From the NCBI GenBank assembly GCA_002269645.1, contig NIVC01003120.1, positions 1 to 49,060 of the forward strand: a stretch of 49,060 bases of DNA. The letters run 5' to 3'. The translations under genes and the position numbers were made by a program. Within the stretch, counting starts at the first letter, position 1. Every line of letters starts with the position of its first letter. This document shows positions 9,863 through 33,600 of this stretch, in pieces. The notes beneath the pieces are model-generated. The model saw only the letters and a list, made by a program, of their open reading frames with translations, made no database searches and was not told the DNA's origin. This DNA is from Macrostomum lignano. Its lineage: Eukaryota.

Positions 9863-12800
9863 CATGCAGTTCGGGTGGCACCTCTTGTTGTTCACCCGGC
9901 AGCGGCAGCCGCCAGAGGTGTCACCCTGGCCGCCGGGTCCCCAGCGCGGGCCGCGGGTGGCCCAGCAGATCTCGGTGCGGCACACGGAGCACATCAGCCA
10001 GTCGCAGCCTTCGCGCTTGGAGAGAAACACCTGGCATTTGGGGCACTTCATGGCCTCTCCGGACTGCAGCATGTCCTGCACGATTCGGGAGTGACATTGG
10101 GAAACCAGTTGCAGTTAGTCTGCTATCCTATAAACTTTACACATGGTGTCACTCAATCAGTCAGTGTCACTCAATCAGCCAAGGCTGTCACTCCATCAGC
10201 CAAGGCTGTCACTCCATCAGCCAAGGCTGTCACTCCATCAGCCAAGGCTGTCACTCAATCAGCCAATAGTGTCAATCAATCAGCCAATAGTGTCAATCAA
10301 TCAGCCAATAGTGTCACTCAATCAGCCAATAGTGTCAATCAATCAGCCAATAGTGTCACTCAATCAGCCAATAGTGTCACTTAATCAGCCAAGGTGTCAC
10401 TCAATCAGCCAAGGTGTCACTCAATCAGCCAAGGTGTCACTCAATCAGCCAAGGTGTCACTCAATCAGCCAAGGCTGTCATTCCATCAGCCAAGGCTGTC
10501 ACTCAATCAGCCAAGGCTGTCACTCAATCAGCCAATAGTGTCATTCCATCAGCCAAGGCTGTCACTCAATCAGCCAAGGCTGTCACTCAATCAGCCAAGG
10601 TGTCACTCAATCAGCCAATAGTGTCAATCAATCAGCCAATAGTGTCAATCAATCAGCCAATAGTGTCACTCAATCAGCCAATAGTGTCACTTAATCAGCC
10701 AAGGTGTCACTCAATCAGCCAAGGTGTCACTCAATCAGCCAAGGCTGTCATTCCATCAGCCAAGGCTGTCACTCAATCAGCCAAGGCTCTCACTCAATCA
10801 GCCAATAGTGTCATTCCATCAGCCAAGGCTGTCACTCAATCAGCCAAGGCTGTCACTCAATCAGCCAATAGTGTCACTCAATCAGCCAATAGTGTCACTC
10901 AATCAGCCAAGGCTGTCACTCAATCAGCCAAGGCTGTCACTCAATCAGCCAATAGTGTCATTCCATCAGCCAAGGCTGTCACTCAATCAGCCAAGGCTGT
11001 CACTCAATCAGCCAATAGTGTCACTCAATCAGCCAATAGTATCACTCAATCAGCCAAGGCTGTCACTCAATCAGCCAAGGCTGTCACTCAATCAGCCAAG
11101 GCTGTCACTCAATCAGCCAAGGCTGTCACTCAATCAGCCAAGGTGTCACTCAATCAGCCAAGGTGTCACTCAATCAGCCAAGGCTGTCACTCAATCACTC
11201 ACCTCCAGTTTCTGCAGTCCCAGCTTGGCATTCTCGTCGTTCTCAGCGCGCCTGCGCAGGTCGTCCTGGTATTGCTGGCAGGTGAGGTCCTTGTGGGAGG
11301 CCCTGCAGGTGACGCAGTTGTGCTCCTGGCACACCTCGCACTCAAACTCGTTAACATTGTCCACCAGTTCAACGAATGCCTCGCAGTTTGGCGTCACGCA
11401 GTGGAAGGCGTTGGTGATGACGGCCTCGGCCTGGCGGAGCCCCAGCCGCTGCAGCCTGGCCAGCTGCTCATCGGTGAGCAGCTCCTTGAGCTCGGCCTCG
11501 GTGACAGTCTGCTGGCACGGCTCGCACGGGCAGATGACGGGCAGCCGGTCGGAGTTGAGCGCGTGGTCCCTCAGGCAGTTCTCGCAGACCTCGTGGCCGC
11601 ACTCGCGCAGCCGCAGGCCCCGGATGCCGTCGCCGTCGTCATCGTCGCCGCCAACGTCGCAGAGGCAGATCGGGCACTCGAAGCCCTGCTGCGCCGGCAC
11701 GGGGATCAGCGAGCCCTGCGTCAGGTTCATGAGCTCGCGGAAGTTGCGCTCGCGCTCCCGCTCGGTCTGCAGATTGCGCAACAGGGGGGGGGGCAGTTCT
11801 GATTGATGAGGATTCCGGCTTCTCACCGTGCGACTGCCCGCAGGTGTACTTTAGGCCCAACCCCAGTGCCGCATTAATGTAAACTAAGCCAGCGGGCTTC
11901 CAGTCTTTCCTGCCCTTCAGGCACACTTTCGGCATTTAAATAGCGGTCACTGTGTCCCTGGAAATTCACTCTTGTCACTGTGTTCCTGGAAAGTCACTCC
12001 GTCACTGTGTCTCTGGAAAGTCACTCCGTCACTGTGTCTCTGGAAAGTCACTCCGTCACTGTGTCTCTGGAAAGTCACTCCGTCACTGTGTCTCTGGAAA
12101 GTCACTCCGTCACTGTGTCTCTGGAAATTCACTCCATCACTGTTTCTCTGGAAAGTCACTCCATCACTGTGTCCCTGGAAATTCACTCCCTCACTGTGTC
12201 TCTGGAAAGTCACTCTTGTCACTGTGTCTCTGGAAAGTCACTCCGTCACTATGTCTCTGTAAATTCACTCCCTCACTGTGTCCCTGGAAAGTCACTCCGT
12301 CACGTGTGTGGAAAGTCACTCTGTCACGTGTGTGGAAAGTCACTCCGTCACTGTGTCTCTGGAAAGTCGCTCCGAGCGTATTCCGAGAGGTCAATCAGCA
12401 AGATTCCTGGTAACGGTGCAATATTGGAAATTCACACCATCAGTCCAACTGATAAAGGCAAATTTGAGAAGTCAGCCAGCCTGCTTAGATCTGTGCAGTC
12501 AGCCGTTCATTGTCAAATAATAAATTAATGCCTGTGAAGAATAGCAGAGGTTTCGTATTAGGTATTTTTTGAGAGAAAAATTTCTTAGACCAAAAAAATC
12601 TGTTTTATATTTCACGGATTACCAAACGTGTCTGAACTTTGTGCTAGGAAATTAGGCAGCTATTGGCCAAGTGGGGACAATATCCACTTTGGAGAGTAAT
12701 AAAAACACTGGATAACCGCATGGCAAGCAAAGAAAATGATAAGAGATAATAGCAAAAAGATTCGAAAAAAGTGTACACGAATTACAGTTACAGAGGCAGA

Positions 12801-15800
12801 TTTACAGAAACAGAAACAGGGGATCTCAGCGCTATCAGGACACCGGTGAACAGGTGATCTCAGATGTCAGGACACCGGTGAACAGGTGATCTCAGATATC
12901 AGGACACCGGTGAATAGGTGATCTCAGATGTCAGGACACCGGTGAACAGTTGATCTTAGATATGAGGATACCGGTAAACAAGTGATGTCAGATATGAGGA
13001 CACCGGTGAACAGGTGATGTCAGATATCAGGACACCGGTGAACAGGTGATCTCAGATATCAGGACAACGGTGAATAGGTGATCTCAGATATGAGGATACC
13101 GGTGAATAGGTGATTTCAGATATCAGGACACCGGTGAAAAGGTGATCTCAGATATGAGGATACCGGTGAATAGGTGATTTCAGATATCAGGACACCGGTG
13201 AACAGGTGATCTCAGATATCAGGACAACGGTGAATAGGTGATCTCAGATATGAGGATACCGGTGAATAGGTGATTTCAGATATCAGGACACCGGTGAATA
13301 GGTGATCTCAGATATGAGGACACCGGTGAACAAGTGATATTAGATATGAGGACACCGGTGAACAGGTGACCTCAGATATCAGGACACAGGTGAATAGGTA
13401 ATCGCAGATATCAGGACACCGGTGAACAGGGGATCTCAGCGCTATCAGGACACCGGTGACAGGTGATCGCAGATATCAGGACACCAGTGACAGGTGATAT
13501 CAGATATTAAGATACCGGTGAACAGGTGATCTCAGATATCAGAACACCTGTAAACAGGTGATCTCAGATATCAGAACACCGGTGACAGGGAATCGGAACG
13601 CATCTTAGGGCATATTGTCACAGTGCTATCACAATGCCATTTGTAAAAGAAGTTCAATAAGATTCCAATGAGGTAGTGGAACACTATGGGTCAGCAGCTT
13701 CGCGAGGTTCATCCGCCTTGTTCTCTTCATCATCCGAGTCGCTGCTGCTGGAATCCGCGGCGGCGGCGGTCATCGGGTTTCTCAGAGCCCGGCGTCTCAA
13801 TGTAGCTCTCTGTGGGATCGGTTGCGCTGGTCTGAGGACTTGGCCCCGCATTTGCCTTGCTTAAAAAAACATTTCCACTTTTTAAAAGCGCATGTACAAA
13901 ACAGTGCAGTTCTGCCGCTCGGCTCTCAGCTTAGTCGCGGAGCTCGATCGCTGATTGGCTGTCAATCTAGCTTTTCAGGCTTCTGATTGGCTGCTTGGGT
14001 CACTACCCCTGCCCCAGGTAATCTAACCCTGCCCCAGCTAATCTACCCCTGCCACAGCTAATCTACCCCTGCCACAGCTAATCTACCCCTGCCACAGCTA
14101 ATCTATCCCTGCCACAGCTAATTTACCCCTGCCACAGCTAATCTACCCCTGCCACAGCTATTCTACCCCTGCCACAGCTAATCAACCCTTGCCACAGCAA
14201 TTCTACCCCTGCCACAGCAATTCTACCCCTGCCACAGCTATTCTACCCCTGCCCCAGCTAATCTACCCCTGCCACAGCTATTCTACCCCTGTCCCAGCTA
14301 ATCTACCCCTGCCACAGCAATTCTACCCCTGCCACAGCTAATCTACCCCTGCCACAGCTATTCTACCCCTGCCACAGCTAATCTACCCCTGCCGCAGCTA
14401 TTCTACCCCTGCCACAGCTAATCTACCCCTGCCACAGCTAATCTACCCCTGCCACAGCTATTCTACCCCTGCCCCAGCTAATCTACCCCTGCCACAGCAA
14501 TTCTACCCCTGCCACAGCTAATCCACCCCTGCCACAGCTATTCTACCCCTGTCCCAGCTAATCTACCCCTGCCACAGCAATTCTACCCCTGCCACAGCTA
14601 TTCTACCCCTGCCACAGCTAATCTACCCCTGCCACAGCTATTCTACTCCTGCCACAGCTATTCTACCCCTGCCCCAGCTATTCTACCCTTGCCCCGGCTT
14701 AAAAATTGTTCACCTGCAGCAAGAAATCAGCCCCTAGAACAGTCAGGCAAAGCAGGGACTCGCAACTCACGAATTTAAGAAATTCGCCGTGCAGCTTCAG
14801 CTGCCGCTGCTCCTCTTCTGCCTGCAGCTCCGCCGGCACCTCGTAGTCGGGCGGCCGCGCCCCACCGCACATCTGGCAGCCGGGCCGCACCGGCTCGTTG
14901 CGGAAGGTGCACTGGGGACAGCTCCAGCCCGGCTGCGGGGCGGAGAGGGCGGAGAAGGCGACGGTAACGTGACGCATTAAAGGATGCAAATTCTGAGATG
15001 ATGGCACACATTAAAGGATTCTAAAATGGCGGCACACATCAAATGATTCTTCTAAAATGGCGGCACAGATCAAAGGATTCTAAAATGGCGGCACATATCA
15101 AATGATTCTAAAATCGCGCACACAAAAAAGGATTCTAAAATTGCGGCACACATCAAAGGATGCAAATCGAGATAGCGGCACGCATCAAAGGATGCGACGA
15201 ATCGAGATGGCGGCACACATCAAAGGGTGCAAATCGAGACGGCGGCACACATCAAAGAATCCTGAATGGTGACATGCATCAAATCATACAAATCGAGATG
15301 GCGGCACACTTCAAAGGATGCAAATCGAGACGGCGGCACACTTCAAAGGATGCAAATCGAGATGGCGGCACACATCAAAGGATGTAAATCGAGACGGCGG
15401 CACACATCAAAGAATCCTGAAATGGTGACATGCATCAAATCATACAAATCGAGATGGCGGCACACTTCAAAGGATGCAAATCGAGACGGCGGCACACTTC
15501 AAAGGATGCAAATCGAGATGACGGCACACATCAAAGGATGTAAATCGAGACGGCGGCACACATCAAAGAATCCTGAAATGGTGACATGCATCAAATCATA
15601 CAAATCGAGATGGCGGCACACTTCAAAGGATGCAAATCGAGACGGCGGCACACATCAAAGAATCCTGAATGGTGACATGCATCAAATCATACAAATCGAG
15701 ATGGCGGCACACTTCAAAGGATGCAAATCGAGATGGCGGCACACTTCAAAGGATGCAAATCGAGATGACGGCACACATCAAAGGATGCAAATCGAGATGG

Positions 15801-17702
15801 CGGCACACATCAAAGGATGCAAATCGAGATGGCGGCACACTTCAAAGGATGCAAATCGAGATGACGGCACACATCAAAGGATGCAAATCGAGATGACGGC
15901 ACACATCAAAGGATGCAAATCGAGATGGTGGCACACATCAAAGGATGCAAATCGAGATGGCGGCACACTTCAAAGGATGCAAATCGAGATGGTGGCACAC
16001 TTCAAAGGATGCAAATCGAGATGACGGCACACATCAAAGAATCCTGAATGGTGACATGCATCAAATCATGCAAATCGAGATGGCGGCACACTTCAAAGGA
16101 TGCAAATCGAGATGACGGCACACATCAAAGGATGCAAATCGAGATGGCGGCACACATCAAAGGATGCAAATCGAGATGGCGGCACACTTCAAAGGATGCA
16201 AATCGAGATGACGGCACACATCAAAGGATGCAAATCGAGATGGCGGCACACTTCAAAGGATGCAAATCGAGATGACGGCACACATCAAAGGATGCAAATC
16301 GAGATGACGGCACACATCAAAGGATGCAAATCGAGATGGTGGCACACATCAAAGGATGCAAATCGAGATGGCGGCACACTTCAAAGGATGCAAATCGAGA
16401 TGACGGCACACATCAAAGGATGCAAATCGAGATGGTGGCACACTTCAAAGGATGCAAATCGAGATGGCGGCACACTTCAAAGGATGCAAATCGAGATGAC
16501 GGCACACATCAAAGGATGCAAATCGAGATGGTGGCACACATCAAAGGATGCAAATCGAGATGGCGGCATACATTAAAGGATGTGAATTCTGAGAGTTAAT
16601 GAAGTGAGCTATTTGAGTCACTCACTTCTTCTTCAACCTCAGGCTGCTGCGGCTGCGACGGCCCTACAGATCCTGCAGAGCCTTCATCGTATTCGGAATC
16701 CTCCCGGCGGATGACCTGCCGGTCCCGCTCGGCCCGTACAGCCGCCTTCAGCTGCTCGAGGTGATCCTTCTTTGGTGGCCAGTGCTCAGGATTCGATGTA
16801 ACCAGGTAGGTCAGCACCTGAGAGATTGGGGAATAAACAGATTTGGCATGCTCCAGGTCCACTTTGAGGACAAACACTCCGCATCATCATGGGATCGCAT
16901 ACTGAGCATCATGGGATCACACACTGAGCATCATCATGGGATCACACACATCAGCATCATCATGGGATCACACACACCAGCATCATCATGAGAACACACA
17001 TCAGCATCATCATGGGATCACACAGCCAGCATCATCATGGGATCACACAGCCAGCATCATCATGGGATCACACAGCCAGCATCATCATGGGATCAGTCAG
17101 CCAGCATCATCATGGGATCACACAGCCAGCATCATCATGGGATCACACAGCCAGCATCATCATGGGATCACACAGCCAGCATCATCATGGGATCACACAG
17201 CCAGCATCATCATGGGATCACACAGCCAGCATCATCATGGGATCACACAGCCAGCATCATCATGGGATCAGTCAGCTTTAGCAGTTCCGCAGTCCCCAAC
17301 CTTGAGCTCCTTAGTCTTGGTGAGCTCATCAAAAATCCTCTCATTGCCCAGCAGCTGGCCATCAGCCATGCACCGCTGAATCGCGGGCGGCAGGCCGAAA
17401 ACCAACAGCGTCTCGTCCTTCAGGTCGGCGATGCAGGCGGTCCGCGGCATGACGAGGCGCAGCGGGCCGCAGGAGCGAGAGCCACCAGCCTGCAGCGTCA
17501 GCGACACCAGCAGGCTCTCCTCAGGCAGGGCGCCACCGGAGGAGGTCGCGGCGCCCTCGGGTTCGGCGTAGGCGCGCAGGCTGAACAGCCGGGAGTTGGC
17601 GAGCTCCGCCGCCAGGCGCTGCGCCTTGTCTACGTTGCGCTCCGACAGAGCGGCGTTGAAGCTCTCAGAGAGGCGCCGGACACCGGCGGGCACCGTCGAC
17701 AT
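9851..17702 (-). CDS. RBCK1: HOIL-1L/RBCK1-like RBR E3 ligase (LTM-UBL-NZF-RING1-IBR-RING2), LUBAC subunit
   Basis: Exons (minus, all phase 0): 17702-17301, 16817-16626, 14932-14771 (3' boundary slightly uncertain), 11766-11203, 10075-9851. [27 protein letters not shown]; [17 protein letters not shown]...VLTYLV; [23 protein letters not shown]; RING1 [13 protein letters not shown]; [21 protein letters not shown]; RING2 [42 protein letters not shown], the diagnostic HOIL-1 C-terminus with the catalytic Cys intact. Confidence 0.95.
10145..11200. repeat. 20-21-bp minisatellite (GTCACTCAATCAGCCAAGGCT) in last RBCK1 intron
   Basis: Tandem periodicity. Confidence 0.96.
11945..12370. repeat. 27-bp minisatellite (GTCACTGTGTCTCTGGAAAGTCACTCC)
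   Basis: Tandem periodicity; 9-aa repeating translations. Confidence 0.95.
12825..13590. repeat. ~32-bp minisatellite (CAGGACACCGGTGAACAGGTGATCTCAGATAT)
   Basis: Tandem periodicity. Confidence 0.95.
14000..14698. repeat. 20-bp minisatellite (CTACCCCTGCCACAGCTAAT)
   Basis: Column-aligned 20-nt periodicity. Confidence 0.97.
14975..16585. repeat. ~32-bp minisatellite (AAAGGATGCAAATCGAGATGGCGGCACACATC)
   Basis: Tandem periodicity with interspersed variant units. Confidence 0.96.
16880..17275. repeat. 25-bp minisatellite (CATCATCATGGGATCACACAGCCAG)
   Basis: Tandem periodicity. Confidence 0.95.
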
Positions 17703-17774
17703 GGCGAGGCGGAGATCAGCATGCAATAAATGCGGTTTTCCTGCTGCATTCTGACCTGCTTCTCGTTTTGGAGC

Positions 17775-19110
17775 AGTTCTCAGGATTTCTGGGCGGTCTT
17801 GGGGTTTCTGGGCGGTTCTCAGGGTTTTTTTGGCGGTTCTCAGGGTTTTTTGGCGGTTCTCAGGGGGGTTCTCAGGGCGGTTCTCGGGGTTTCTTGGCGG
17901 TTCTCAGCGTTTCTTGGCGGTTCTCAGGGTTTCTTGGTGGTTTTCAGGGTTTCTTAGTGGTTCTCAGGGTTTCTTGGTGGTTCTCAGGGTTTCTTGGTGG
18001 TTCTCAGGGTTTCTTGGTGGTTCTCAGGGTTTCTTGGTGGTTCTCAGGGTTTCTGGGCGGTTCTCAGGGTTTCTGGGCGGTTCTCAGGGTTTCTTGGTGG
18101 TTCTCAGGGTTTCTTGGCGGTTCTCAGGGTTTCTTGGTGGTTCTCAGGGTTTCTTGGTGGTTCTCAGGGTTTCTGGGCGGTTCTCGGGGTGGTTTCTGAG
18201 TGATTCTCAGGGTGGTTTCTGAGTGATTCTCAGGGTGGTTTCTGAGTGATTCTCAGGGTGGTTTCTGAGTGATTCTCAGGGTGGTTTCTGAGTGATTCTC
18301 AGGGTGGTTTCTGAGTGATTCTCAGGGTGGTTTCTGAGTGATTCTCAGGGTGGTTTCTGAGTGATTCTCAGGGTGGTTTCTGAGTGATTCTCAGGGTGGT
18401 TTCTGAGTGATTCTCAGGGTGGTTTCTGAGTGATTCTCAGGGTGGTTTCTGAGTGATTCTCAGGGTGGTTTCTGAGTGATTCTCAGAGTGGTTTCTTATT
18501 GATTCTCAGGGTGGTTTCTGAGTGATTCTCAGGGTGGTTTCTGAGTGATTCTCAGGGTGGTTTCTGAGTGATTCTCAGGGTGGTTTCTGAGTGATTCTCA
18601 GGGTGGTTTCTGAGTGATTCTCAGAGTGGTTTCTTATTGATTCTCAGGGTGGTTTCTGAGTGATTCTCAGGGTGGTTTCTGAGTGATTCTCAGGGTGGTT
18701 TCTGAGTGATTCTCAGGGTGGTTTCTGAGTGATTCTCAGGGTGGTTTCTGAGTGATTCTCAGGGTGGTTTCTGAGTGATTCTCAGGGTGGTTTCTTATTG
18801 ATTCTCAGGGTGGTTTCTGAGTGATTCTCAGGGTGGTTTCTGAGTGATTCTCAGAGTGGTTTCTTATTGATTCTCAGGGTGGTTTCTGAGTGATTCTCAG
18901 GGTGGTTTCTGAGTGATTCTCAGGGTGGTTTCTGAGTGATTCTCAGGGTGGTTTCTGAGTGATTCTCAGGGTGGTTTCTGAGTGATTCTCAGAGTGGTTT
19001 CTTATTGATTCTCAGGGTGGTTTCTGAGTGATTCTCAGGGTGGTTTCTGAGTGATTCTCAGGGTGGTTTCTGAGTGATTCTCAGGGTGGTTTCTGAGTGA
19101 TTCTCAGGGT
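17775..19110. repeat. Compound array: 20-bp TTCTCAGGGTTTCTTGGTGG (to ~18185), then 23-bp TTCTCAGGGTGGTTTCTGAGTGA
   Basis: Tandem periodicity with an abrupt unit switch. Confidence 0.96.
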
Positions 19111-19449
19111 GGACAAAATAAAAAGTATGCCGTTTTTAGCTTTGTTAGTTATAAAAGATTATGTATATAAAATTTATTTACTACACTGGATGTGCGATGC
19201 AACATTGTTTAAAGTAGGTTACCTTAACCTCAATAAAATATCTGGCTAAAATAGCACGAGCAAGGCGATAAAAAACGCGATGAGATTTGGACTGTCAGAT
19301 GACACGAAATCATGTTCAAGGATGTTATTTATGGATGAATAGATCAAAACACCAGCGCACCTTTCTACCTGGCATTCAATAATTGGGGAGGCTGTGCATA
19401 CGGCTGCTGTTATAGGCGAACAGGCGTTACAGTAACAGCTTATTCTGTC

Positions 19450-20210
19450 AAGCAGGTGTTACAGGGGTTATGTCTAACAGGTGTTACAGGGGTTATATCT
19501 AACAGGTGTTACAGAGTTTCTGGGAGATGTGTCTAACAGGTGTTACAGGGGTTATATCTAACAGGTGTTACAGAGTTTCTGGGAGATGTGTCTAACAGGT
19601 GTTACAGGGGTTATATCTAACAAGTGTTACAGAGTTTCTGGGAGATGTGTCTAACAGGTGTTACAGGGGTTATATCTAACAGGTGTTACAGAGTTTCTGG
19701 GAGATGTGTCTAACAGGTGTTACAGGGGTTATATCTAACAGGTGTTACAGAGTTTCTAGGAGATGTGTCCAACAGGTGTTACAGAGTTTCTAGGAGATGT
19801 GTCTAACAGGTGTTACAGAGTTTCTAGGAGATGTGTCTAACAGGTGTTACAGAGTTTCTGGCAGATGTGTCTAACAGGTGTTACAGAGTTTCTGGCAGAT
19901 GTGTATAACAGGTGTTACAGAGTTTCTGGTAGATGTGTCTAACAGGTGTTACAGAGTTTCTGGCAGATGTGTCTAACAGGTGTCACAGAGTTCCTGGCAG
20001 ATGTGTTTAACAGGTGTTACAGAGTTTCTAGGAGATGTGTCTAACAGGTGTTACAGAGTTTCTGGCAGATGTGTCTAACAGGTGTTACAGAGTTTCTGGC
20101 AGATGTGTCTAACAGGTGTTACAGAGTTTCTGGCAGATGTGTCTAACAGGTGTTACAGAGTTTCTGGCAGATGTGTCTAACAGGTGTTACAGAGGCATTC
20201 TGTCTAACTG
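19450..20210. repeat. ~34-bp minisatellite (TCTAACAGGTGTTACAGAGTTTCTGGCAGATGTG)
   Basis: Tandem periodicity. Confidence 0.95.
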
Positions 20211-20489
20211 GTACAAAAGCGGCACCAGAGCAGCGTCCATCTGCTAAAATTTTTGAAAATAATAATAAAAAACTAGGAAATAAGAAAAATAAGAAATTGT
20301 AATTATTTACACTACAAATCAAGCATTAAAAATGGCAAATCGCAGAGGTGAAAAAAATCAAAGTGAATAAGAACTGGAATTGCGAATCGCAGTTGACAAG
20401 CGGCTGTTCCTCGTGTGCCATCAGTCCTGCAATTTCAGGTGGGACAACACAAATATGATAAATTACTCTGAGTCCGAGACTTCGAATGG

Positions 20490-21690
20490 ACTAGCAATCC
20501 ACTGTGACTAGACTAGCAATCCACTGAGACTAGACTAGCAATCCACTGTGACTAGACTAGCAATCCACTGTGACTAGACTAGCAATCCACTGAGACTAGA
20601 CTAGCAATCCACTGTGACTAGACTAGCAATCCACTGTGACTAGACTAGCAATCCACTGAGACTAGACTAGCAATCCACTGAGACTAGACTAGCAATCCAC
20701 TGTGACTAGACTAGCAATCCACTGTGACTAGACTAGCAATCCACTGTGAATAGACTAGCAATCCACTGTGAATAGACTAGCAATCCACTGTGACTAGACT
20801 AGCAATCCACTGTGACTAGACTAGCAATCCACTATGACTAGACTAGCAATCCACTGTGACTAGACTAGCAATCCACTGTGAATAGACTAGCAATCCACTG
20901 TGACTAGACTAGCAATCCACTGTGAATAGACTAGCAATCCACTGTGACTAGACTAGCAATCCACTGTGAATAGACTAGCAATCCACTATGACTAGACTAG
21001 CAATCCACTGTGACTAGACTAGCAATCCACTGTGAATAGACTAGCAATCCACTGTGACTAGACTAGCAATCCACTGTGAATAGACTAGCAATCCACTGTG
21101 AATAGACTAGCAATCCACTGTGAATAGACTAGCAATCCACTATGACTAGACTAGCAATCCACTGTGAATAGACTAGCATTCCTCTGTGAATAGACTAGCA
21201 ATCCACTGTGACTAGACTAGCAATCCACTGTGAATAGACTAGCAATCCACTGTGAATAGACTAGCAATCCACTGTGAATAGACTAGCAATCCACTGTGAC
21301 TAGACTAGCAATCCACTGTGAATAGACTAGCAATCCACTGTGAATAGACTAGCAATCCACTGTGAATAGACTAGCAATCCACTATGACTAGACTAGCAAT
21401 CCACTGTGAATAGACTAGCAATCCACTGTGACTAGACTAGCAATCCACTGTGACTAGACTAGCAATCCACTGTGAATAGACTAGCAATCCACTGTGACTA
21501 GACTAGCAATCCACTGTGACTAGACTAGCAATCCACTGTGAATAGACTAGCATTCCTCTGTGAATAGACTAGCAATCCACTATGACTAGACTAGCAATCC
21601 ACTGTGACTAGACTAGCAATCCACTGAGACTAGACTAGCAATCCACTGTGAATAAACTAGCAATCCACTGTGACTAGACTAGCAATCCAC
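20490..21690. repeat. 22-bp minisatellite (GACTAGACTAGCAATCCACTGT)
   Basis: Tandem periodicity. Confidence 0.97.
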
Positions 21691-21700
21691 TATCACTCAC

Positions 21701-24207
21701 AGACGAAGAGCTGCCGTCCTGAACGAGCTGCAAACACGGAGGAGGCTGCGCCGGTCTCCTGTGCCCGACTGTCTGCTTTGCGCCCGACCGTGATGCAACC
21801 AGGCCGCGGGGCGGGCGCTTTCTGGCCGCAAATGGCAGCTGGAGAGGCGGCTGCGCATAATTCATCTGGCTGGTGACTCCCGCCACTGGGAGCCTGGGAG
21901 GCTTCTGCCAAAGGAGTAAAGGGAGGCTGATTGGCAACTTTTGAAAGTAGGTATTGACTGAGCACTCCTCACATCGATACAGGATTGACTGAGCACTCCT
22001 CACATCAATACAGCACTGACTCAGCACTCCTCACAGCAATACAGGATTGACTGAGCACTCCTCACATCGATACAGGATTGACTGAGCACTCCTCACATCA
22101 ATACAGGATTGACTCAGCACTCCTCACATCAATACAGGATTGACTGAGCACTCCTCACATCAATACAGCACTGACTGAGCACTCCTCACATCAATACAGC
22201 ACTGACTGAGCACTCCTCACATCAATACAGGATTGACTGAGCACTCCTCACATCAATACAGCACTGACTGAGCACTCCTCACATCAATACAGGATTGACT
22301 GAGCACTCCTCACATCAATACAGGATTGACTCAGCACTCCTCACATCAATACAGGATTGACTGAGCACTCCTCACATCAATACAGCACTGACTGAGCACT
22401 CCTCACATCAATACAGGATTGACTGAGCACTCCTCACATCAATACAGCACTGACTGAGCACTCCTCACATCAATACAGGATTGACTGAGCACTCCTCACA
22501 TCAATACAGCACTGACTGAGCACTCCTCACATCAATACAGGATTGACTGAGCACTCCTCACATCAATACAGCACTGACTCAGCACTCCTCACACCAATAC
22601 AGGATTGACTGAGCCTACAGTCCTCCTGCGAATATTATCAATAGTTTGATATTTTTACTTCAACTCGCACCTGCGATCGCAGCAACTCGCGCGGCAGGTC
22701 CCCGGGCTTCCCGGCGGCCAGCGGGCAGTTCTGCAGGGACAGCAGGAAATCCCGACTGTAGCAGATTCTCCTGCCGCCGCTGCCCGTCTGCTGCTGCCGC
22801 TGCTGCTGCCGCTGTTTCGCAGCCGGCACCGGCCGAAGCACTCGGAACAGCCCCCCAATGTGGCCTCTGCGCCGCTGTCCAGGCGACTCTCTGCTCTGCA
22901 AGCCGCTGCCTTTTTCGTCCGAAGACGCCCCGGACGAGGGCGCCGATTCGGGCCGCTCAGTGGCGCACATTTCGCAGCCGGGTCGGCGCCACCTGTTCCT
23001 GAAGGTGCACACCGGGCAGTCCCAGGTGCGCTGCGGCTGCTCGGCCTGTCATGGGGGTGGTGGGTACCAGAATCAATCAATTGTAGTCGATCGCCTACTG
23101 AAGAGTAGTAAGAACAGAATGTAAAGCGAATCTCTTATTGCTTGCCTAGTCAGGCATGCAGGCCTTACACTGTGCATATCTAGCCAGTACTAATACGCTC
23201 AACTGCTTTTCCATCCACTTACCACAGGCTCCATGGCAACGGGCACCGTTGCCGCGGGCACAGCTGGACTTGGCTCAGCATCCTCTTCTGCTGGTGGAGC
23301 TTCTGGCGCCGCTGCGGGCTGCGGATCGCCGAGCACGTACAGGTGCACCGGCTGAGTCTCGCTGACCGCCCCGAGATCTTTTAAGCACCTGGGAAGCAAC
23401 GATGATGACGGAGTTTTGCGTGGTTGGAATCAAAAAATGAAGCGTGGCCCAGCAACTGAGGATCTGGGAGGCTGGCCCAGCAACTGAGGATCTGGGAGGC
23501 TGGCCCAGCAACTGAGGATCTGGGGGGCTGGCCCAGCAACTGAGGATCTGGGAGGCTGGCCCAGCAACTGAGGATCTGGGAGGCTGGCCCTGCAAATGAG
23601 GATCTGGGAGGCTGGCTCAGCAGCTGAGGATCTGGGAGGCTGGCCCAGCAACTGATGATCTGGGAGGCTGGCCCAGCAGCTGAGGATCTGGGAGGCTGGC
23701 CCTGCAAATGAGGATCTGGGAGGCTGGCCCAGCAACTGAGGACCTAGAAGGGTAGCAGCAGGCGAGAAAAAATCACCTGTCGTCAGAAGCCAGCAGCCCG
23801 CCTGCGATCCAGCACTGCCGTCCGGGCGGTAGGTCCCGAGCTCGAGCCGCCACCCGGGCCCGCAGCTCGCCAATCCGAGTGTCGCCGCGCGCCATCAAGC
23901 GGAGCAGCTGGCGCGGCCGGCCGCGGCCCTCCAGGGCTACCGGCAGGGCGAACCAGCCGTCATCCAGCAGCGACCGCCGCGCGACCACTGGCGATTCTTC
24001 CTGCTGCTGCGGCATCGCCAGCGGAGGCGGCGCAGGCCGGATGTCCAGCTGGACGCGCCGTTCGCAGAGCAGCCGCGCTTGGCGAGCTGCCTCCTCGGCG
24101 TCGCCTGACTTGATGGCAGCTTCAAGGCGGGCCGCGGCCGATGAGACAGCTGGCCACCAGTCAGCAGCAACGCCCTTGGAAGCTGCGGTGGGACTGGGAG
24201 GCTCCAG
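21701..24207 (-). CDS. SHARPIN-like protein (LTM-UBL-NZF, no RBR seen) with a C-terminal eIF4E-binding-type motif; 5' and 3' ends uncertain
   Basis: Exons (minus): 24207-23777, 23388-23223, 23045-22671, 21904-21701; phases 2, 0, 0 match. LTM ARLEAAIKSGDAEEAARQARLLCERRVQLDI; UBL LPPGRQCWIAGGLLASDDRCLKDLG..VHLYVLG; NZF WDCPVCTFRNRWRRPGCEMCATERP; then RRICYSRDFLLSLQNCPLAAGKPGDLP. Confidence 0.85.
21952..22615. repeat. 31-bp minisatellite (GACTGAGCACTCCTCACATCAATACAGGATT)
   Basis: Tandem periodicity. Confidence 0.96.
23438..23745. repeat. 28-bp minisatellite (GATCTGGGAGGCTGGCCCAGCAACTGAG)
   Basis: Tandem periodicity, in the intron splitting the UBL. Confidence 0.95.
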
Positions 24208-27087
24208 CTGTAAAATAGAAGACTAGACTAGATGGCTGAATTCCAGAAAAGCCAATGCACAGTCCATAAAAAGATGGTCTTTTAACATGCAGATGCAGGC
24301 CACCTTTTAAAGTGGCAAATAGTTAGTAGTAATGCAACTAGGCCATAGGCCATAGCTAACCTATGTTTTATTTAAACTCAGGAAAATTGATTAATGGCTT
24401 GCTAATAGAATAATTAAAAGCCCAAAGCAATGTCTACAAAATATATATGCTAGCTAATGTAGTCTATTAGTATTAATTATTTAAAATGATTTAATTAAAA
24501 AAGAATGCAAATAGTAATTAGTTAGACTTATTAGTTATAAGTTAACCACCAGATTATTTTTTGTGTATTATTTTTTACACATGCCCCCCCAACATCATGT
24601 ATGTATTTCTACCAGATTGGAAACATAGTGTATACCTAAAAATGAAAAATATGAATATGAAAAAAGAGATAATTCAAAGGCACAATAAATGCTTTATAGT
24701 GAAGCAAAAATTGTTGAAAGGTATAATATGCTAAGTTAACATTTAATACCATAGCATAGACAAAAATATTTTTAAAAACTATTTATTAAAAGTTTTTTTT
24801 ATTTAAAAATATCTTGCTTCTAGTTCTCTTACATAGTCTACTATTTATTTCTTAATTTATAATTGTTATTTTATTCTTTTTAAAATGTTCATACAAATTT
24901 TGACTTGCTTTTTAGATAAATTTATTCAATTATTGTGTATATTAATTATGATCATAGTCCTTATAGTTATACGAAAATATACTACAAAAGTTAAAGAAAT
25001 TGTGACAATAAAATGGTCCAAACCTTTTTTTGCCTAGTCTGATTTTCATGAACTAAATTTATTTGAAAACCTTTCAATAAGATCTACACAATAGAATGCA
25101 AACATTTCCATATTTTTCAAATAAAAAAATCTTAGGACCCCTCTTATTATAATAAGTATAACTATAATATAAGTGGATTGATTCTTAAAATAATTTTTTT
25201 TTATACTGGATTAACAAATTAGTTGTTTGTTATTGTTATATTCTGAAATATAAATAATTACTCATAATTAAAAGATATACTTGTTTTAATATTAATATTA
25301 TACATTATATAAAATTAAATACAAGACTGCGACTGCGAGTGGTACATAGTAAAGGGGATAGGGAAGAAAGTAGATGTACCCACATATACTTGATAAGTCA
25401 GATTAACTTTAATGATAACCATTAACAAGACCATGGATCTTTCAAAGAGGCATGCTACCTACCTACTTCATCTCTTAGAAGTTAGATAGACTAGATATAA
25501 GATATCCCTCCTAAAAATATATAATTATGGCTATGCTATAAAAATTATGATATTGGGATTAAAAAGTTAGCATAAAAATACTTTCTTAGTAAGACTATTA
25601 GGTTACTTTGTAAGATTATCCTAAAAAATCGAGTTATCTTTTATTTTAATAGGCCTAACTCAGCATCCAAATATGAAAAAAACAACTTCAACGGCTTTTC
25701 AGCTTATTTTATAAAACATAATAGCTGATCTTTTCGCTATTTTATTAGCAAACATTGTGTTTTTTATCTAAATACTATGTGAGTCGGACCCATTTGGATG
25801 ATTTTTGAAAATCACCTGCTGTCCCTGCAATTTGAAAGCGAAAATAAATTCTGATTTCTAAACAAGGCATCAACTTGAAAAATATCATTAATGACATCTG
25901 ATCGGGAAAATTAGTTTTTAGTTAATAATTTGAGTTTCAAGCAGAAACGTAACTTTATGAAATTATGATTATGTTTTAAATGCTCTATTACTCTGTTTTA
26001 TTAGTAAATCTTATTACTCTCACGTTGTTATAACGATAAACGACGACATCTAACGGTGTGTAAAACAGTCATTTTAGCTAAAATTTACTCTTGTGGCGAT
26101 CGGACAGCTTCTTGTCTAAATAAGACCGTGCTTAAGGCACTGCAAAAAACAAGTCCTCCGCGAAATCTGTTCGGAAAACACAGTTTTCGTGTTGCCTAAC
26201 AATTGTCAACGACAATTATCTTAACAGCTGCAGAGGCAGGTCCCAGAATTTTTGTGTCGTCGGTCTCCATCCAGCTTTTAAAACCTCTTTAATCTCGGAT
26301 GAAAATATATACGTGTAGCTCGTAATTTCCTAACATGCAATGTCAGAAGAGAAAAACGCTTCTATCAGGACAAAGCTACATGTATATGTTACATGTACAT
26401 GTACATTGTATGGTTATACACCATGTCAATGTGTGTACTAGCTGTACATGTATACCCGTACATATAAGTATGTTTAGCCCTAGATTGTCAGGCTGAAAAG
26501 TACCTGATACATTCCAACCACGTCTTGTGGTGCTTGCATCTTTGATTGCAGTAACGTACAACTGCAAATATACGCAGGAATTTAAATTTGGAGGGGGCAA
26601 TTCCCCAACCCTATAATTGTGCAATTATTTGGTATCTTGGTACGTTAATTGGACGCCCTACGCTCGTAATGTACATGTACATGTATTGCTGAGATGTCAA
26701 GGGAATCATGGGGGGAATTCCTGAGATTTCATGGTTGAAGTCATGCTGAATCCATACGTAGTTTATTCAAAAAAATTATTCCATTCTTTGTTGGCTCCCA
26801 ACGGGGGCACAGCTAATTGCTAGTGTATCTCCTAAATGTGGGTAGGTTTAATCCCCCTGTCACTTGGTGGGCGCCCGGCGGTGTCTTGGTTGGCATTGGC
26901 ACCGATCTCTCTCTTTTCTTATGGTGGTCTCCCCACTTGGTAGGCGCCCCCTGACTCTCGCTGGGCGCGCCCCCTTCATTTCCAGGTCAGTGCCCTTCAC
27001 CCCCATATACATGTATCTTCTAGGCAATAGATATGGTACTCCTGTCTCGCTAAACTCGCTTAAACTAAATATCTTTTTGCGATCTAC

Positions 27088-28861
27088 CTTAGTGTATTCA
27101 AAAAGTTCTTAGACACCCCTCATATCTCTGCATCTGTTCGACCGATTTTGATGAGAATTTATACAAACATGGGTCTATATTTTGATGAATTCAGTGCTAG
27201 AGTTTCAGCTTGGTCGTATAGACAGAACGAAAGCAATCGATCATTTACTGACGAACCTACGAAATTAGCAATACGATTTTAAGCACATAACAAAACGTAC
27301 AAGCAAAAGGGGCAAACGGTTCAAGTTGGCAAGTTCCCAAACTTCAAAAATCAGATCACCAATCATGAAAATCTTCGAAGTAATCACCGTTCCGTTGAAT
27401 GCACTTGTCATACCGCATCGGCAGCTCTTCGATCCATCCTAACCACGTGTCTCTAGGAGTCGCTCTGATGAGCCCCTCAACAGCCGTTTGCAGCTCGGGG
27501 AAGCTAGCGAACCTCTTGCCTCTCAGCTGCGCCTTGACGTGTCCAAAAAGACCATAGTCAGACGGTGCCAAATCAGGCGAGTAGGGCGGATGCTGCCACT
27601 GCTGGAATCTGAGGCTGTCGATGTGAGAGCGAGTGAGGGCTGCCGAGTGCGGCCGGGCATTGTCGCAGTGCAGCAGGACGCCCTCGCGCACGATCCGACG
27701 CCGTTGCAGTAGCTCCTGTCTCAGCCTCGTGAGCTCGTCACAAAACCGCTCGCTGTTCTGTGTCTGGCCCTGGCCGTACCACGTGAACATGAGGGGCCCG
27801 CTCGCATCCCAAAAAACACTTAACATGATCTTCTTGGGATAGGTGCCTGCGCTTTCGACGTCACCGCCGCCGCCGCCCCTCGGAAGCCAGGCCCTCGACT
27901 CCCGCCGGGAGAGTGGGTCGTACAGGGCAAACATGGACTCATCTTGAGTTACAAATCTGCTTTTGAACTCGTCTCCCAGAGCTGAAATTGCCGCCCTTTG
28001 TTGCAAGCAGACTTCGTATCGGCGATTTTTCTGCTCGGCAGTTAGCAGTCTTGGCACCCATCGAGAGACCAGCTTTGACAGACCAAGATGCTCGTGCAGA
28101 ATTTGGAAGACCGAGCCACACGAAATCCCGGCGGCATTGGCCAACTCGTCAATAGTGATGTGGCCGTTTTCACTTACCAGCTCTTCGATCAGGATGGCAC
28201 TGCTGTCGTTGACTGCAGTAGCTGGTCGGCCTGAGCGTGGCTTGTCCTGCACGCTCATTTCGCCGTCCTTTCTCTTCCGGACCCAGTTCGCGACGGTTGC
28301 TCGACAGCAGGCATCATTTCCAAAACGGCTGACTAATCTCTGGTGGATAGTGTTCACGGACATGCCTTCGTCCGCAAAAGCAAAAACGATCAGGCGCTGC
28401 GAAACTTTATCGCGATATGCACTAGCCATTCTTAAACCATCTGAGGTTGGTTCTGCATCTCAGCATTTCAATCTGACGTTCATTCTGCGCACTCAGTCTA
28501 ATGCTGCCTACTGTTTTGTTCTATCTTTTTTGTCTATGGCTAAACCCTCGCAGCTTGAAAGTAATGATTAATCAATACTCACCGAAAGCTTTTATTCCTC
28601 TAAAAACAAACTGCGATTTCACAACCCCCCCGGGCCAGTTTAGAGTGAGGTCCAGATCCGATGCTGTTCAAAATCGTATTGCTAATTTCGTAGGTTCGTC
28701 AGTAAATGATCGATTGCTTTCGTTCTGTCTATACGACCAAGCTGAAACTCTAGCACTGAATTCATCAAATATAGACCCATGTTTGTATAAATTCTCATCA
28801 AAATCGGTCAAACAGATGCAGAGATATGAGGGGTGTCTAAGAACTTTTTGAATGCACTAAG
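27088..28861 (-). mobile_element. Full-length Tc1/mariner DNA transposon with ~190-bp terminal inverted repeats
   Basis: Left TIR ~27088-27280 is the reverse complement of ~28670-28861 (2 substitutions and one 1-nt homopolymer indel seen). TA dinucleotides at 27090-91 and 28858-59 are candidate TSDs, which would put the ends at 27092 and 28857. Encloses an intact transposase. Confidence 0.95.
27356..28429 (-). CDS. Mariner (DD34D) transposase, 357 aa, intact
   Basis: N-terminal HTH region, SGRP, WVPRLL linker, TQDES (D1), HCDNARPH (D2), YSPDLAPSDY (D3); 34 residues counted between D2 and D3. Confidence 0.97.
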   Translation of the reverse strand: MASAYRDKVSQRLIVFAFADEGMSVNTIHQRLVSRFGNDACCRATVANWVRKRKDGEMSVQDKPRSGRPATAVNDSSAILIEELVSENGHITIDELANAAGISCGSVFQILHEHLGLSKLVSRWVPRLLTAEQKNRRYEVCLQQRAAISALGDEFKSRFVTQDESMFALYDPLSRRESRAWLPRGGGGGDVESAGTYPKKIMLSVFWDASGPLMFTWYGQGQTQNSERFCDELTRLRQELLQRRRIVREGVLLHCDNARPHSAALTRSHIDSLRFQQWQHPPYSPDLAPSDYGLFGHVKAQLRGKRFASFPELQTAVEGLIRATPRDTWLGWIEELPMRYDKCIQRNGDYFEDFHDW

Positions 28862-30641: not shown

Positions 30642-33600
30642 ATGGCTCCCGTGCACATGGAGTACGAAGAGGTTCTGGAACACATCGGCAGCCTTGGCCG
30701 CTACCAGATCGTGCTGTTCAACCTCCTCGCCTCGCTGTCGTGGAAGGCCGCTGCAAACATGGTCATTACGGTGTTCCACGTGGTCCGACCGGCGTTCGTG
30801 TGCCAGCAGGCCTACCCGAACTGGCTGGAGAGTCCCCCCACCTGGGCACAGATCGCTAACGCTTCAGCCACAGGCGGTCAGGACAGCCAGTGCTGGTTCA
30901 CGCCGCCACGAAATGGCACTTCCGGGGAGCAGCAACAGCAGCAGTGCACCCTGTTTGCCTACGATAAAAGCGAGTGGAAGGAGACAATTACAACGCAGGT
31001 AAACAGTCACATTCTGAGATAAAGACTTGGCTTTCAGGTGTTTATTAACGATCTATTTCCATTCACGCTCACACGCAGTGGGATCTTGTCTGTCAGCGCC
31101 AAGGCCTGGAGCCGCTTGTGTTCGGCAGCTACGCCCTCGGCTACGGCTTCGGCGTCGTGCTGGGCATCTTTGCCGACAAGTGAGCAGTTCAATTAGGCGG
31201 GCTTAAGTACCCACTTCAAATCAGAATACGGCTTAAAAACTAGATCGAACGACTAGTTAAAGAATAACAGCGCAAACTTTATTGATTGTGCCGTCAAACT
31301 AAACCTGGCATGCACCAAGACTCACCCTGACCCATCTAAATCAACCACTACTCATCCTGCCAGCTCACTCCGAGTGCAACCCACGCTGCCCCACCGCAGG
31401 TTCGGTCGTCGACCAGTGCTGCTGGTGAGCTGCGCGATGGAGGCCCTGTTCACTCTGCTGGAGAGCGTCTCTCCGAACTTCCTCTCCTACCTGGGGCTGC
31501 ACTTTGCCACGGCATCTTTGCCACAGTTAATCTGCTGTCCACTGTGTGCATCACCGAGTTTGTCGGCTGCAAGCACAGAGCTTTGGTCGCCAATTTACTG
31601 TGGCTGTACTATTGTCTAGGCTACATGTCTGTGGCCGGTATGGCTTACCTAGTGAGACAGTGGCGGTGGCTGCAACTGCTCACCTGCCTGCCCTGCCTTT
31701 TTTACATTGCCTGCTACTTGTGAGTGCAGAAGCGAATCTACGATAACTTTGGCTTGGTTGGACTTTTGCCAGACTAAAAACTACAGACGTGAAGACGTGT
31801 ACTTTATTATTAAGACCTAGATTCCAAGCTTTGAAAAGCAAGAGCTAACTTAAGATGTATGCAACTCTAACTCTTATACAATAGGTCAATGATCAATGAT
31901 CAAAAGAAAAAAACTGAATGAATTCAACGCCCAGTTGCAAACCGTTGCAGTCTCCTGCAGGAATCGCCGCGCTGGCTGATCGCCCACGGCCGGTACACCG
32001 ACGCCCTCTACGTGTGCGAAAACATCGCCAGAGTGAACGGCCGGACCATCCCGACCGCTGCCAAGGAGTTGCTGGTGAGTCCAGCGAGACCTACGATGAG
32101 TTACTCAGTTTAAAGTTAACCCCGTACTGAAGTAAAATTCCACCCATCCCTCAACCCGCAGACCTACGGCTTTCAGACCTCGCAGCCACCTGAGCACAGT
32201 CGCGAAGGCAACGTCTCGGAAATGTTCAGGACCCGGATAATGCTAAAAAAGTCCCTCATTTTGTTCTGTGCCTGGTGAGTCTAGTATGGAAAATGTATCG
32301 CGATGGATAAGATTTTGTAGCTTTTGTTGAACAAAAGATTTATTCTTATACTACTTCAGGGGTGTCGCAAAACGACCATCCTCCCGATTAAAAGTTTTGG
32401 GAACATGCTAATGCTTAGTTTCCTTAGGCTTAGGCTTGCTTCACGAAATAATTACTGGCTCTAACAACGAAAAAGTCTTGCACCTGCACATACTATGTAC
32501 ATTTATTACAACTTTTAGTCCCATCCGTCTTTAGGGACTTTAGGGACTTTAGGATCTTTAATCTTTAGGGATCTTTAGGTATCGCCTGTTACGCTCGTAT
32601 GGCGTAAAAAGTTCTACATTTACTGAAAAATGGTTGCTATGCTCAGTATGAAATGCTAATTATAGTTATAAGGCTCTGTGTCCCCTTCGATAAAGTCCAT
32701 GGGGACATTCTGCTTACAAAATAAAAGAAGCGAATTAGAGAATTTTGCCTCCTACTTCCTCACGCCTGCGCAGGTTCGCAATCAGTTTAAACTACAACAG
32801 CATATCCCTGGACTCTGATTTTCTGGCCAGCGACGTCTTCATAAACACCGTCCTGTCCGGTCTGATCGAGGTCCCGGCCTACGTCACGGCCTGGATTGTG
32901 GCCGAGAAAGTCGGACGCAGAATTCCCATTGCCGTCTTATACACGATGCTTAGCGCCTGCCTAATCTCGGTGGCTGTGCTCACTCCAGGTGAGCAATCCT
33001 GCCAGTAGGGTTCAATGACCTTCAAGATACTTTTCGATATAATTAGATTGTTGCAAAATGTGAAGTGAATCATATCGCATCTCGACATCGGTAACAGATA
33101 GGATAGACCGCTGCATCCGTGCGGATCTTTCTTGTCTTTTCTGTAGTCTATATAACTAAATCTCAAAAGTTTTTATGTACTAAATAAGGACGCGTCCAAC
33201 TCAGTGTTGGGCTATATCCCGTCTTGAACAATGATTTTTTTGCCCGCCAGCCGCACGCGGTCAAAAAAGGAGGCTGCGTCACCTTAAGGCGAGGTCACTA
33301 TATGACGTAACCACTCCCGCGTCCTTGTCAACGTCTGCGCAGTCCCTGCATGCACAGGCTCAGGGCAGCAGGCCTCCAATCCGATCACTTGCCCAGCCGG
33401 CATCTAACAACTCAGCAGGACATCGTGAGGCCGGGTCAGTCATGCTCTCTGGACAAGGCGTCAGTCAGCTCGTAGCCAAGGTCCCACAGCACTATAAAGC
33501 TACAGTATCAAAAAAGTCTTAGCTATTCTAGAAAAATTTACATCGGGCCGTGTAACATCCATATTTTTGCTCTCTTCTGCTCTGCTTCATCAAATATTGA

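Follow-up and report, generated by a model that had tools for sequence, protein, structure and literature searches.

Why should a protein with the domains of a ubiquitin adaptor end in a segment that resembles the translational repressor 4E-BP? The question is raised by the window analyzed here, the entire 49,060-bp contig NIVC01003120.1 of the Macrostomum lignano Mlig_3_7 assembly (GCA_002269645.1), whose minus strand carries the gene BOX15_Mlig006084g1 (PAA53162.1). The gene encodes a protein of about 393 residues (392 in the annotated, 5'-partial record) comprised, in this order, of a LUBAC (linear ubiquitin chain assembly complex) tethering motif (LTM), a ubiquitin-like domain (UBL), an NZF (RanBP2-type zinc finger) and a tail. 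In the signaling of immunity, cell death and stress, adaptors of the SHARPIN and HOIL-1L type recognize ubiquitin chains and assist in making them, and the 4E-BPs are the classic mTOR-controlled brake on cap-dependent translation. An initial annotation of the sequence had described the protein as a SHARPIN-like adaptor with a 4E-BP-type eIF4E-binding motif. We find that BOX15_Mlig006084g1 encodes a transcript-supported fusion of an LTM-UBL-NZF adaptor and a 4E-BP-derived core without the elements of mTOR control. Our analysis also adds to the initial annotation the apparent origin of the core in the animal's own 4E-BP, a Leu-Leu motif of the type found in Drosophila Thor, an adjacent HOIL-1L orthologue and a probable spliced leader (SL) acceptor.

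The gene model has five minus-strand exons with AG/GT borders, which translate into the exact sequence of PAA53162.1/PAA46902.1:

23777-24207, minus strand: exon A, with the LTM plus the start of the UBL; begins at an AG acceptor behind a polypyrimidine tract
23223-23388, minus strand: exon B, with the C-terminal part of the UBL and then a Pro/Ala-rich linker
22671-23045, minus strand: exon C, with the NZF, a linker of about 60 residues and the full eIF4E-binding-type segment in a single open frame
21701-21904, minus strand: exon D, Pro/Arg-rich tail (KPPRLPVAGVTSQMNY...SSSS)
20421-20426, minus strand: start of the last exon (E), GAC TGA (Asp and stop), with the 3' untranslated region after it

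The C terminus of the protein reads ...VQDGSSSSD. An identical gene model is present on a second contig of Mlig_3_7, NIVC01004658.1 (L001). The GenBank annotation of this assembly was built from RNA-seq only (StringTie/TACO, TBONE and TransDecoder), and TBONE splits the models at mapped trans-splice and poly(A) sites (PMC5730564). The initial annotation had left it to RNA-seq to join exon C to the UBL exons; the RNA-seq-derived coding sequence (CDS) does join them, as far as transcript models allow.

The 4E-BP-like segment follows the NZF within exon C:

22692-22772, minus strand: 4E-BP-core homologue RRICYSRDFLLSLQNCPLAAGKPGDLP, residues 291-317 (translation, Pfam, phmmer and BLASTP)

As initially proposed, the segment and the NZF share one exon and one frame. 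The exon (22671-23045) is open, its translation gives exactly RRICYSRDFLLSLQNCPLAAGKPGDLP, and the two elements are separated by some 60-64 residues with no stop in between. Such a short match could be a chance resemblance within a low-complexity disordered tail. Indeed, six-frame translation of the window yields 40 instances of the bare YxxxxL-phi 7-mer, which is therefore meaningless alone. For the extended pattern [RK]xxYx[RK]xxL-phi, the same translation yields a single instance, at RRICYSRDFLLSLQNCPLAAGKPGDLP. The Pfam profile of the family (eIF_4EBP, PF05456), which had been suggested as a check, gave a divided answer. The isolated tail scored 24.4-25.2 bits against a cut-off of 24 (E 1.6e-5 on a 65-residue fragment), with profile positions 42-74 of 117 matched, but the full protein scored 21.9-22.4 bits, just under the curated cut-off.

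Other comparisons speak more clearly against chance. The tail matched no PDB sequences other than 4E-BP1 and Thor peptides in complex with eIF4E (5BXV, 4UED, 4UE8, 1WKW and 3HXG), and a comparison of the full protein with the PDB matched residues 286-318 to 4E-BP1. An exhaustive phmmer search of 1.84 billion representatives returned 128 significant matches, among them the 4E-BP-family proteins P0099 and P0102, which match residues 282-320 (E 3.4e-4); the remainder consists of copies from M. lignano, proteins of SHARPIN/RBCK1 type and others with an NZF. BLASTP aligned GGRRICYSRDFLLSLQNCPLAAGKPGDLPR to the M. lignano 4E-BP (P0151) with 18 identities in 30 positions (E 3e-9). Furthermore, the Smith-Waterman score was 111, about 10 standard deviations above the 37 ± 7 obtained over 2000 shuffles (maximum 65), none of which reached 60% of the observed value. 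On the strength of the Pfam, phmmer, BLASTP and shuffle scores, the tail segment is to be regarded as a true 4E-BP homologue, far beyond chance, which agrees with the original proposal that the resemblance extends past the 7-mer. The segment also has in common with the M. lignano 4E-BP a lineage-specific cysteine (described below). Chance resemblance is thus effectively refuted.

How much of the 4E-BP binding region does the segment retain? Alignment to 4E-BPs and to Thor places two motifs in it:

22740-22760, minus strand: canonical eIF4E-binding motif YSRDFLL (Y295-L301), from the alignment to 4E-BPs
22674-22694, minus strand: candidate non-canonical (lateral-surface) motif PRELLRS, residues 317-323, from the phmmer match to 4UE8_B

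The sequence RRICYSRDFLL can be matched position by position to 4E-BP1 and to the 4E-BP of M. lignano, including the flanks (R/K-I-x-Y-x-R-x-F-L-phi). AlphaFold2 predicts a short helix at residues 297-304 with low confidence. After the helix come an N-C-P-L-A elbow and a Pro-rich linker ending in D-L-P. PRELLRS then aligns without gaps to PSCLLRG of Drosophila Thor, and L320/L321 correspond to Thor L79/L80 (phmmer, PDB 4UE8_B). In Thor, the non-canonical motif comprises residues 76-84, specifically Cys78/Leu79/Leu80, and is required both for binding to the lateral surface of eIF4E and for displacing eIF4G (Igreja et al., 2014; PMC4164784). The in-register Leu-Leu motif completes a predicted bipartite binding region inside exon C, and PRELLRS would work as a Thor-type non-canonical motif. 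We also considered KPPRLPVAGVTSQ in exon D as a displaced IPGVT motif or a duplicated linker. Exon D scored 27 against 4E-BP for a shuffle mean of 30, and this candidate was dropped because the Leu-Leu motif in exon C explains the region better.

The segment thus shares with 4E-BP1-3 and Thor a homologous core of 30-33 residues with a YxRxFLL helix, an N-x-P-L-A elbow and a Pro-rich linker ending in LP, and with Thor the hydrophobic LL at the non-canonical position. It differs from 4E-BPs in its setting, since these are small (about 100-160 residues), stand-alone, disordered proteins whereas the core of the fusion occupies residues 288-323 of a multidomain protein. It also lacks their regulatory sites. 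The equivalents of the Thr37/Thr46-type TP sites, Ser65 and Thr70 are all absent from the segment, and no S/T-P occurs in the 30 residues to each side of the motif, nor in QQTGSGGRRICYSRDFLLSLQNCPLAAGKPGDLP. Neither the RAIP nor the TOS (FEMDI) motif is present in the protein. By contrast, the M. lignano 4E-BP keeps QTPGG, TTPGG, RTPP and a terminal FEMDI (P0151). The initial annotation had noted NCP in place of the NSP phosphosite and the lack of RAIP and TOS; all of this held, and the lack of any proline-directed site flanking the motif can be added. Control by mTORC1 is not expected because the TP, Ser65 and Thr70 sites and the RAIP and TOS motifs are missing, so the suggestion that the protein operates outside mTOR control follows from the sequence.

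Bipartite eIF4E-binding regions with a canonical and a non-canonical motif are also found within larger proteins such as Mextli, 4E-T, Cup and GIGYF, which are modular eIF4E-interacting proteins (Igreja et al., 2014, PMC4164784; Peter et al., 2015, PMC4573856). As predicted for the fusion protein, their regulation is mTOR-independent, and other domains confer specificity on the repressor. The eIF4E-binding region of the fusion, however, derives from a classical 4E-BP rather than from an independent motif. To our knowledge, none of the modular eIF4E-interacting proteins has a partner that is a ubiquitin-binding or LUBAC-type module.

The 4E-BP-derived helix could also have been reused for a partner other than canonical eIF4E, such as the 4EHP/eIF4E2 class, another eIF4E paralogue specialized for trans-spliced mRNAs with a trimethylguanosine cap, or an unrelated protein. 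Binders of 4EHP carry the signature YxYxxxxL-phi, which the motif lacks, and no data point to any alternative partner. Nevertheless, the substitutions cluster in the linker (AAGKPGD versus ARTPPAG), a cysteine replaces Ile/Val just before the tyrosine, and flatworm mRNAs have two types of cap (PMC8629364). On this evidence, a switch to another partner is improbable, and eIF4E remains the expected ligand of the tail.

Where did the segment come from? The search from P0102 recovered two copies of a M. lignano 4E-BP (P0151 and P0156; Pfam 114 bits), encoded by a single-exon gene with QTPGG/TTPGG, RTPP, IPGVT and a C-terminal FEMDI. The position of Ser65 is serine in 31 of the 33 cores that we collected, and cysteine only in the window protein and the M. 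lignano 4E-BP (PAA68211.1/PAA64169.1), whose second copy has the cysteine too. This common residue indicates that the tail is a descendant of the flatworm lineage's own 4E-BP, captured after the change from Ser to Cys. The capture is not recent: over the 30 codons of the core, only 59 of 90 nucleotides agree with the 4E-BP gene, the codons differ at 6 of the 18 conserved residues (for example, Ser AGC versus TCC and Arg CGN versus AGR), and no trace of the N- and C-terminal thirds of the 4E-BP was detected flanking the core in the Smith-Waterman/shuffle comparison.

Outside Macrostomum, the closest relative of the tail is the second core of an unusual group of 4E-BPs. This small family (P0102, P0132-P0135 and P0099, from metagenome/Logan data) has eukaryotic proteins of 123-165 residues with two tandem complete eIF4E-binding cores, and most of these proteins terminate in a TOS-like motif.

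A rival reading is that the tail is a decaying relic: the 3' end of the adaptor gene would have taken up all or part of a 4E-BP copy, and the core would persist only through the short time elapsed, in a functionless disordered tail. Such decay would fit the disappearance of the TP sites, TOS, RAIP and any similarity in the flanks, the featureless, Pro/Arg-rich character of exon D, and the fact that the fusion is known from one species only. The pattern of loss does not fit it. The 30-residue contact core is still 60% identical in protein while its DNA fell to 66%, with switches between codon families, and the 4E-BP sequence around it has become unrecognizable, so the loss was selective. Furthermore, the key contact positions (Y, R, F/L, LL, the P-L-A elbow, and LP plus LL) all survive, and diverged paralogous copies retain the core peptide. 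We therefore regard the relic as unlikely. The segment appears instead to be under constraint, for which the selective retention of eIF4E-contact residues is the main argument.

The diverged copies supply a weaker one. Their source is the older ML2 assembly, and positions such as HIGG versus HNEG/QQEG set them apart from the window. In P0006 (A0A1I8FJB6), RRICYSRDFLLS is intact; in P0002 (A0A1I8FQK2) and P0003 (A0A1I8FNP4) it can be read in a shifted frame (ESATVGIFCCP), where the Ser-to-Phe change, decoded by hand, is synonymous in the codons of Phe299/Leu300. P0003 was also the sole match of a word-based search with the 134-residue tail. That these copies keep the core peptide may reflect the same constraint.

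The UniProt models of the locus and its paralogues derive from ML2 and are frameshifted or merged, which makes them unfit for domain analysis. For example, P0131 (A0A1I8IIQ7) has about 990 extra residues, partly identical to minus-strand open reading frames (ORFs) at 29-34 kb that overlap a transporter gene on the plus strand. In P0002, P0004 (A0A1I8FFL3) and P0006, the adaptor is merged with the HOIL-1L gene.

What kind of adaptor received the core? The N-terminal module has the following elements:

24028-24135, minus strand: LTM, residues 25-60 (Pfam PF25393)
23777-23955, minus strand: N-terminal part of the UBL, residues about 85-144 (phmmer versus PDB, and BLASTP)
23328-23388, minus strand: C-terminal part of the UBL, to about residue 164, in exon B
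22950-23030, minus strand: NZF, residues 205-231, WDCPVCTFRNRWRRPGCEMC (Pfam PF00641)

The LTM matched its Pfam profile with E 2.8e-6 (27.3-27.6 bits for a cut-off of 27.5) and is predicted by AlphaFold2 to form a helical hairpin, with a pLDDT (predicted local distance difference test) above 90. Residues 25-173 match the Sharpin LTM-UBL chain 5Y3T_C (E 9.6e-4, phmmer versus PDB), as well as the RBCK1 chain of 5Y3T; the Pfam ubiquitin match to the UBL is weak (E 0.19). The NZF (Pfam E 8.5e-6) has its best PDB matches in the NZFs of HOIL-1L/RBCK1 (3B08, 8IM5 and 2CRC; E 2.5e-7) and carries T213, F214 and Met225, which we take to be the ubiquitin-contacting T-F...M residues of Npl4-type NZFs. The NZF is therefore a predicted ubiquitin-chain binder and may prefer linear chains.

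The module resembles both accessory subunits of LUBAC. Like SHARPIN, the protein has an LTM, a UBL and a C-terminal-type NZF in the same order and no RING1-IBR-RING2 (RBR) module, and BLASTP with its N-terminal 245 residues scored marginally better against vertebrate SHARPIN-type proteins (E 1e-12 to 1e-14) than against RBCK1s (1e-8 to 1e-10) or the N terminus of the neighboring HOIL-1L gene (3e-11). Unlike SHARPIN, it lacks the N-terminal PH domain, its mRNA appears to start just before the LTM, and its C terminus is extended by 160 residues that include the 4E-BP core, a feature of none of the SHARPINs recovered in the search. It shares the LTM-UBL-NZF module with HOIL-1L/RBCK1, and its NZF is nearest to the solved RBCK1 NZFs, but the RBR is missing and the identity to the UBL-NZF region of its neighbor is about 33%. 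We rejected the possibility of a recent tandem copy of the neighbor's N terminus, to which the module is no closer than to vertebrate SHARPIN. Hence, of the initial label "SHARPIN-like", the LTM, UBL and NZF stand while orthology is not established. It is reasonable to describe BOX15_Mlig006084g1 as SHARPIN-like in architecture minus the PH domain, with shared ancestry and independent origin both possible.

The combination with a 4E-BP core is confined to M. lignano within the sequences searched. An NZF was recognizable in 111 of the 128 phmmer matches, and only M. lignano proteins combined it with the extended motif; no other SHARPIN/RBCK1 relative among them had such a tail, in keeping with the earlier statement that vertebrate SHARPIN and HOIL-1L are not known to carry one. 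In full-text searches of the literature, no publication connected an eIF4E-binding motif with SHARPIN or LUBAC, and the 4E-BPs of M. lignano were not described in any.

The neighboring gene is an orthologue of HOIL-1L/RBCK1, located 2.7 kb downstream on the same strand across a spacer made mostly of minisatellites:

17301-17708, 16626-16817, 14771-14932, 11203-11766 and 9851-10075, minus strand: exons of the HOIL-1L/RBCK1 orthologue (PDB 8EAZ match)

It has a UBL region, an NZF and RING1-IBR-RING2 (PDB 8EAZ, E 3e-68; IBR, E 5e-7), and its C terminus falls inside the match to the RBCK1 structures (PDB 8EAZ and 9EGV). The annotated model in the window is 5'-partial, with 511 residues; our reconstructed products of 516 and 514 residues had no exact match in the protein collection. 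The two genes of LUBAC-accessory type are tandem neighbors and possibly one transcriptional unit. Drosophila has neither LUBAC accessory subunit (PMC5090701), which makes a SHARPIN-like and a HOIL-1L gene side by side in a flatworm noteworthy.

How does an mRNA with a 5'-partial reading frame begin? The CDS opens at a strong acceptor at 24207 (ttctattttacag followed by CTGGAG), and we saw no coding exon upstream within 3 kb, which hold an AT-rich block and then a mariner element. A potential ATG exon at about 26504-26539 (MQAPQDVVGMYQ) has no annotation or homologue and was discarded, as the models begin at the 24207 acceptor. The SL of M. lignano is 35 nucleotides long and has ATG at its 3' end (PMC8629364). 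At 24207, this ATG would be in frame with the first codon of exon A. The absence of an upstream exon together with this frame suggests that the BOX15_Mlig006084g1 mRNA probably starts by SL trans-splicing at 24207 and uses the SL AUG as its initiator. An initiator AUG supplied by the SL is already known in flatworms.

The same mechanism could in principle divide the gene into two products, if an internal trans-splice acceptor or an alternative splice in exon C released a separate small 4E-BP-like protein with the SL AUG. About 30-39% of M. lignano genes are trans-spliced to an SL that ends in ATG (PMC5730564, PMC8629364), and there is an in-frame TTGCAG/AGC between the NZF and the motif. The small product could start only from an SL-donated AUG because no internal Met occurs between the two. 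Yet this candidate acceptor has no polypyrimidine tract, TBONE left the model uncut on both contigs, and the NZF and the motif lie in a single exon and frame. Separate products are thus very unlikely, and we treat adaptor and core as parts of one protein.

A second trace of the SL is found in the neighboring gene. An exact 12-nucleotide copy of the SL 3' end (ATTTATTGCATG) lies at 17720-17731 on the minus strand, 18 nucleotides upstream of the HOIL-1L-like ATG and just before the annotated 5' ends of the transcripts; the chance expectation is 0.01 per window. It could be the fossil of a retro-copied or gene-converted 5' end that bore the SL, or a coincidence.

Taken together, we favor, with somewhat better than even confidence, a lineage-specific M. 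lignano domain fusion that yields an mTOR-independent, eIF4E-docking ubiquitin adaptor. Constitutive binding of eIF4E by the tail is likewise somewhat more probable than not. The tail would compete with eIF4G by constitutive binding to the dorsal and lateral surfaces of eIF4E, and the NZF would bind ubiquitin chains. Through its LTM and UBL, the protein would be attached to HOIL-1L, the product of the neighboring gene, and to a ligase of HOIP type. So assembled, the protein could repress or sequester cap-bound mRNA at sites of ubiquitin signaling or, alternatively, present eIF4E as a substrate to RBR ligases. Ubiquitin or the assembly of the complex, and not mTOR, would determine how active it is. 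This suggests a direct link of ubiquitin signaling with cap-dependent translation.

Several observations weigh against this reading. The full protein stays under the Pfam cut-off noted above, and its AlphaFold2 single-sequence model is poor (mean pLDDT 45). A vertebrate-type IPGVT non-canonical motif is not in register at the homologous position, and exon D, including VAGVTS, has no significant 4E-BP similarity (Smith-Waterman score 27 versus a shuffle mean of 30). The case for conservation consists of comparisons between paralogues within M. lignano, some from the error-prone ML2 assembly. The L001 copy is identical to the window through exons and introns and therefore says nothing about selection. 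On the adaptor side, Pfam found no PH domain and the CDS begins 24 residues before the LTM, which leaves SHARPIN orthology unproven. Lastly, we infer the LUBAC membership of the fusion protein and assume the existence of a LUBAC in M. lignano. Because the protein has only part of the features that define 4E-BPs and SHARPIN, it is best filed as neither a strict 4E-BP nor a proven SHARPIN orthologue, but as a new domain architecture made from two known modules.

Long, very regular minisatellite arrays at 17002-23742 fill the intergenic spacer and three of the four introns of the fusion gene (all except the 177-bp B-C intron), with, for example, 28 bp x 11, 31 bp x 21, 22 bp x 55, 34 bp x 22, 23 bp x 41, 20 bp x 20 and 25 bp x 11. 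Similar minisatellites are found across the whole window, and the array length differs between the two assembled gene copies. We also identified other features around the two genes:

24240-26100: 1.9-kb block of about 31% G+C (45-58% elsewhere), directly upstream of exon A, with no long ORFs
27359-28459, minus strand: uninterrupted 367-codon ORF of a mariner/Tc1-type transposase (Pfam Transposase_1, E 1.8e-12; DDE_3; HTH_32), about 3 kb upstream of the gene
31625-33932, plus strand: major facilitator superfamily (MFS)/sugar-transporter gene
39747-45041, plus strand: exons of an AMP-binding enzyme of acyl-CoA-synthetase type (PF00501; E 3e-13, 3e-8 and 3e-12), broken up by long repeat ORFs rich in Pro/Ser and Gly/Asp

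From both sides, the alignment of L001 with the window reaches 24836, and about 1.6 kb of L001 (7723-9345) has no window match of at least 300 nucleotides. The two copies thus appear to differ just upstream of the gene.

What would such a fusion mean? One broad answer is that it acts as a "Rosetta stone", exposing a general, hitherto unnoticed physical coupling of the HOIL-1L/SHARPIN module with the cap-binding complex. We consider this rather doubtful. In mammals, HOIL-1 is reported to bind PABPC1 and to protect ribosomes during stress (PMC13179138), which fits the idea of the module acting on the translation machinery. If the coupling were general, the protein would be a 4E-BP that responds to ubiquitin chains and not to mTOR, and eIF4E-bound messenger ribonucleoproteins would be silenced or passed to ubiquitination where LUBAC-type chains form. 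If, on the other hand, the tail does not bind eIF4E, the case reduces to a lineage-specific fusion in a hypothetical protein.

The locus joins in one natural protein two well-studied modules that had not been connected before. The absence of every mTOR handle from the fusion turns this into a concrete prediction, that ubiquitin signaling can gate eIF4E directly, in an animal where RNA interference and transgenesis are feasible (PMC5730564). The case also illustrates the 4E-BP core as a portable module open to recruitment by other proteins, and a non-vertebrate LTM-UBL-NZF protein encoded beside a HOIL-1L orthologue bears on the origin of SHARPIN.

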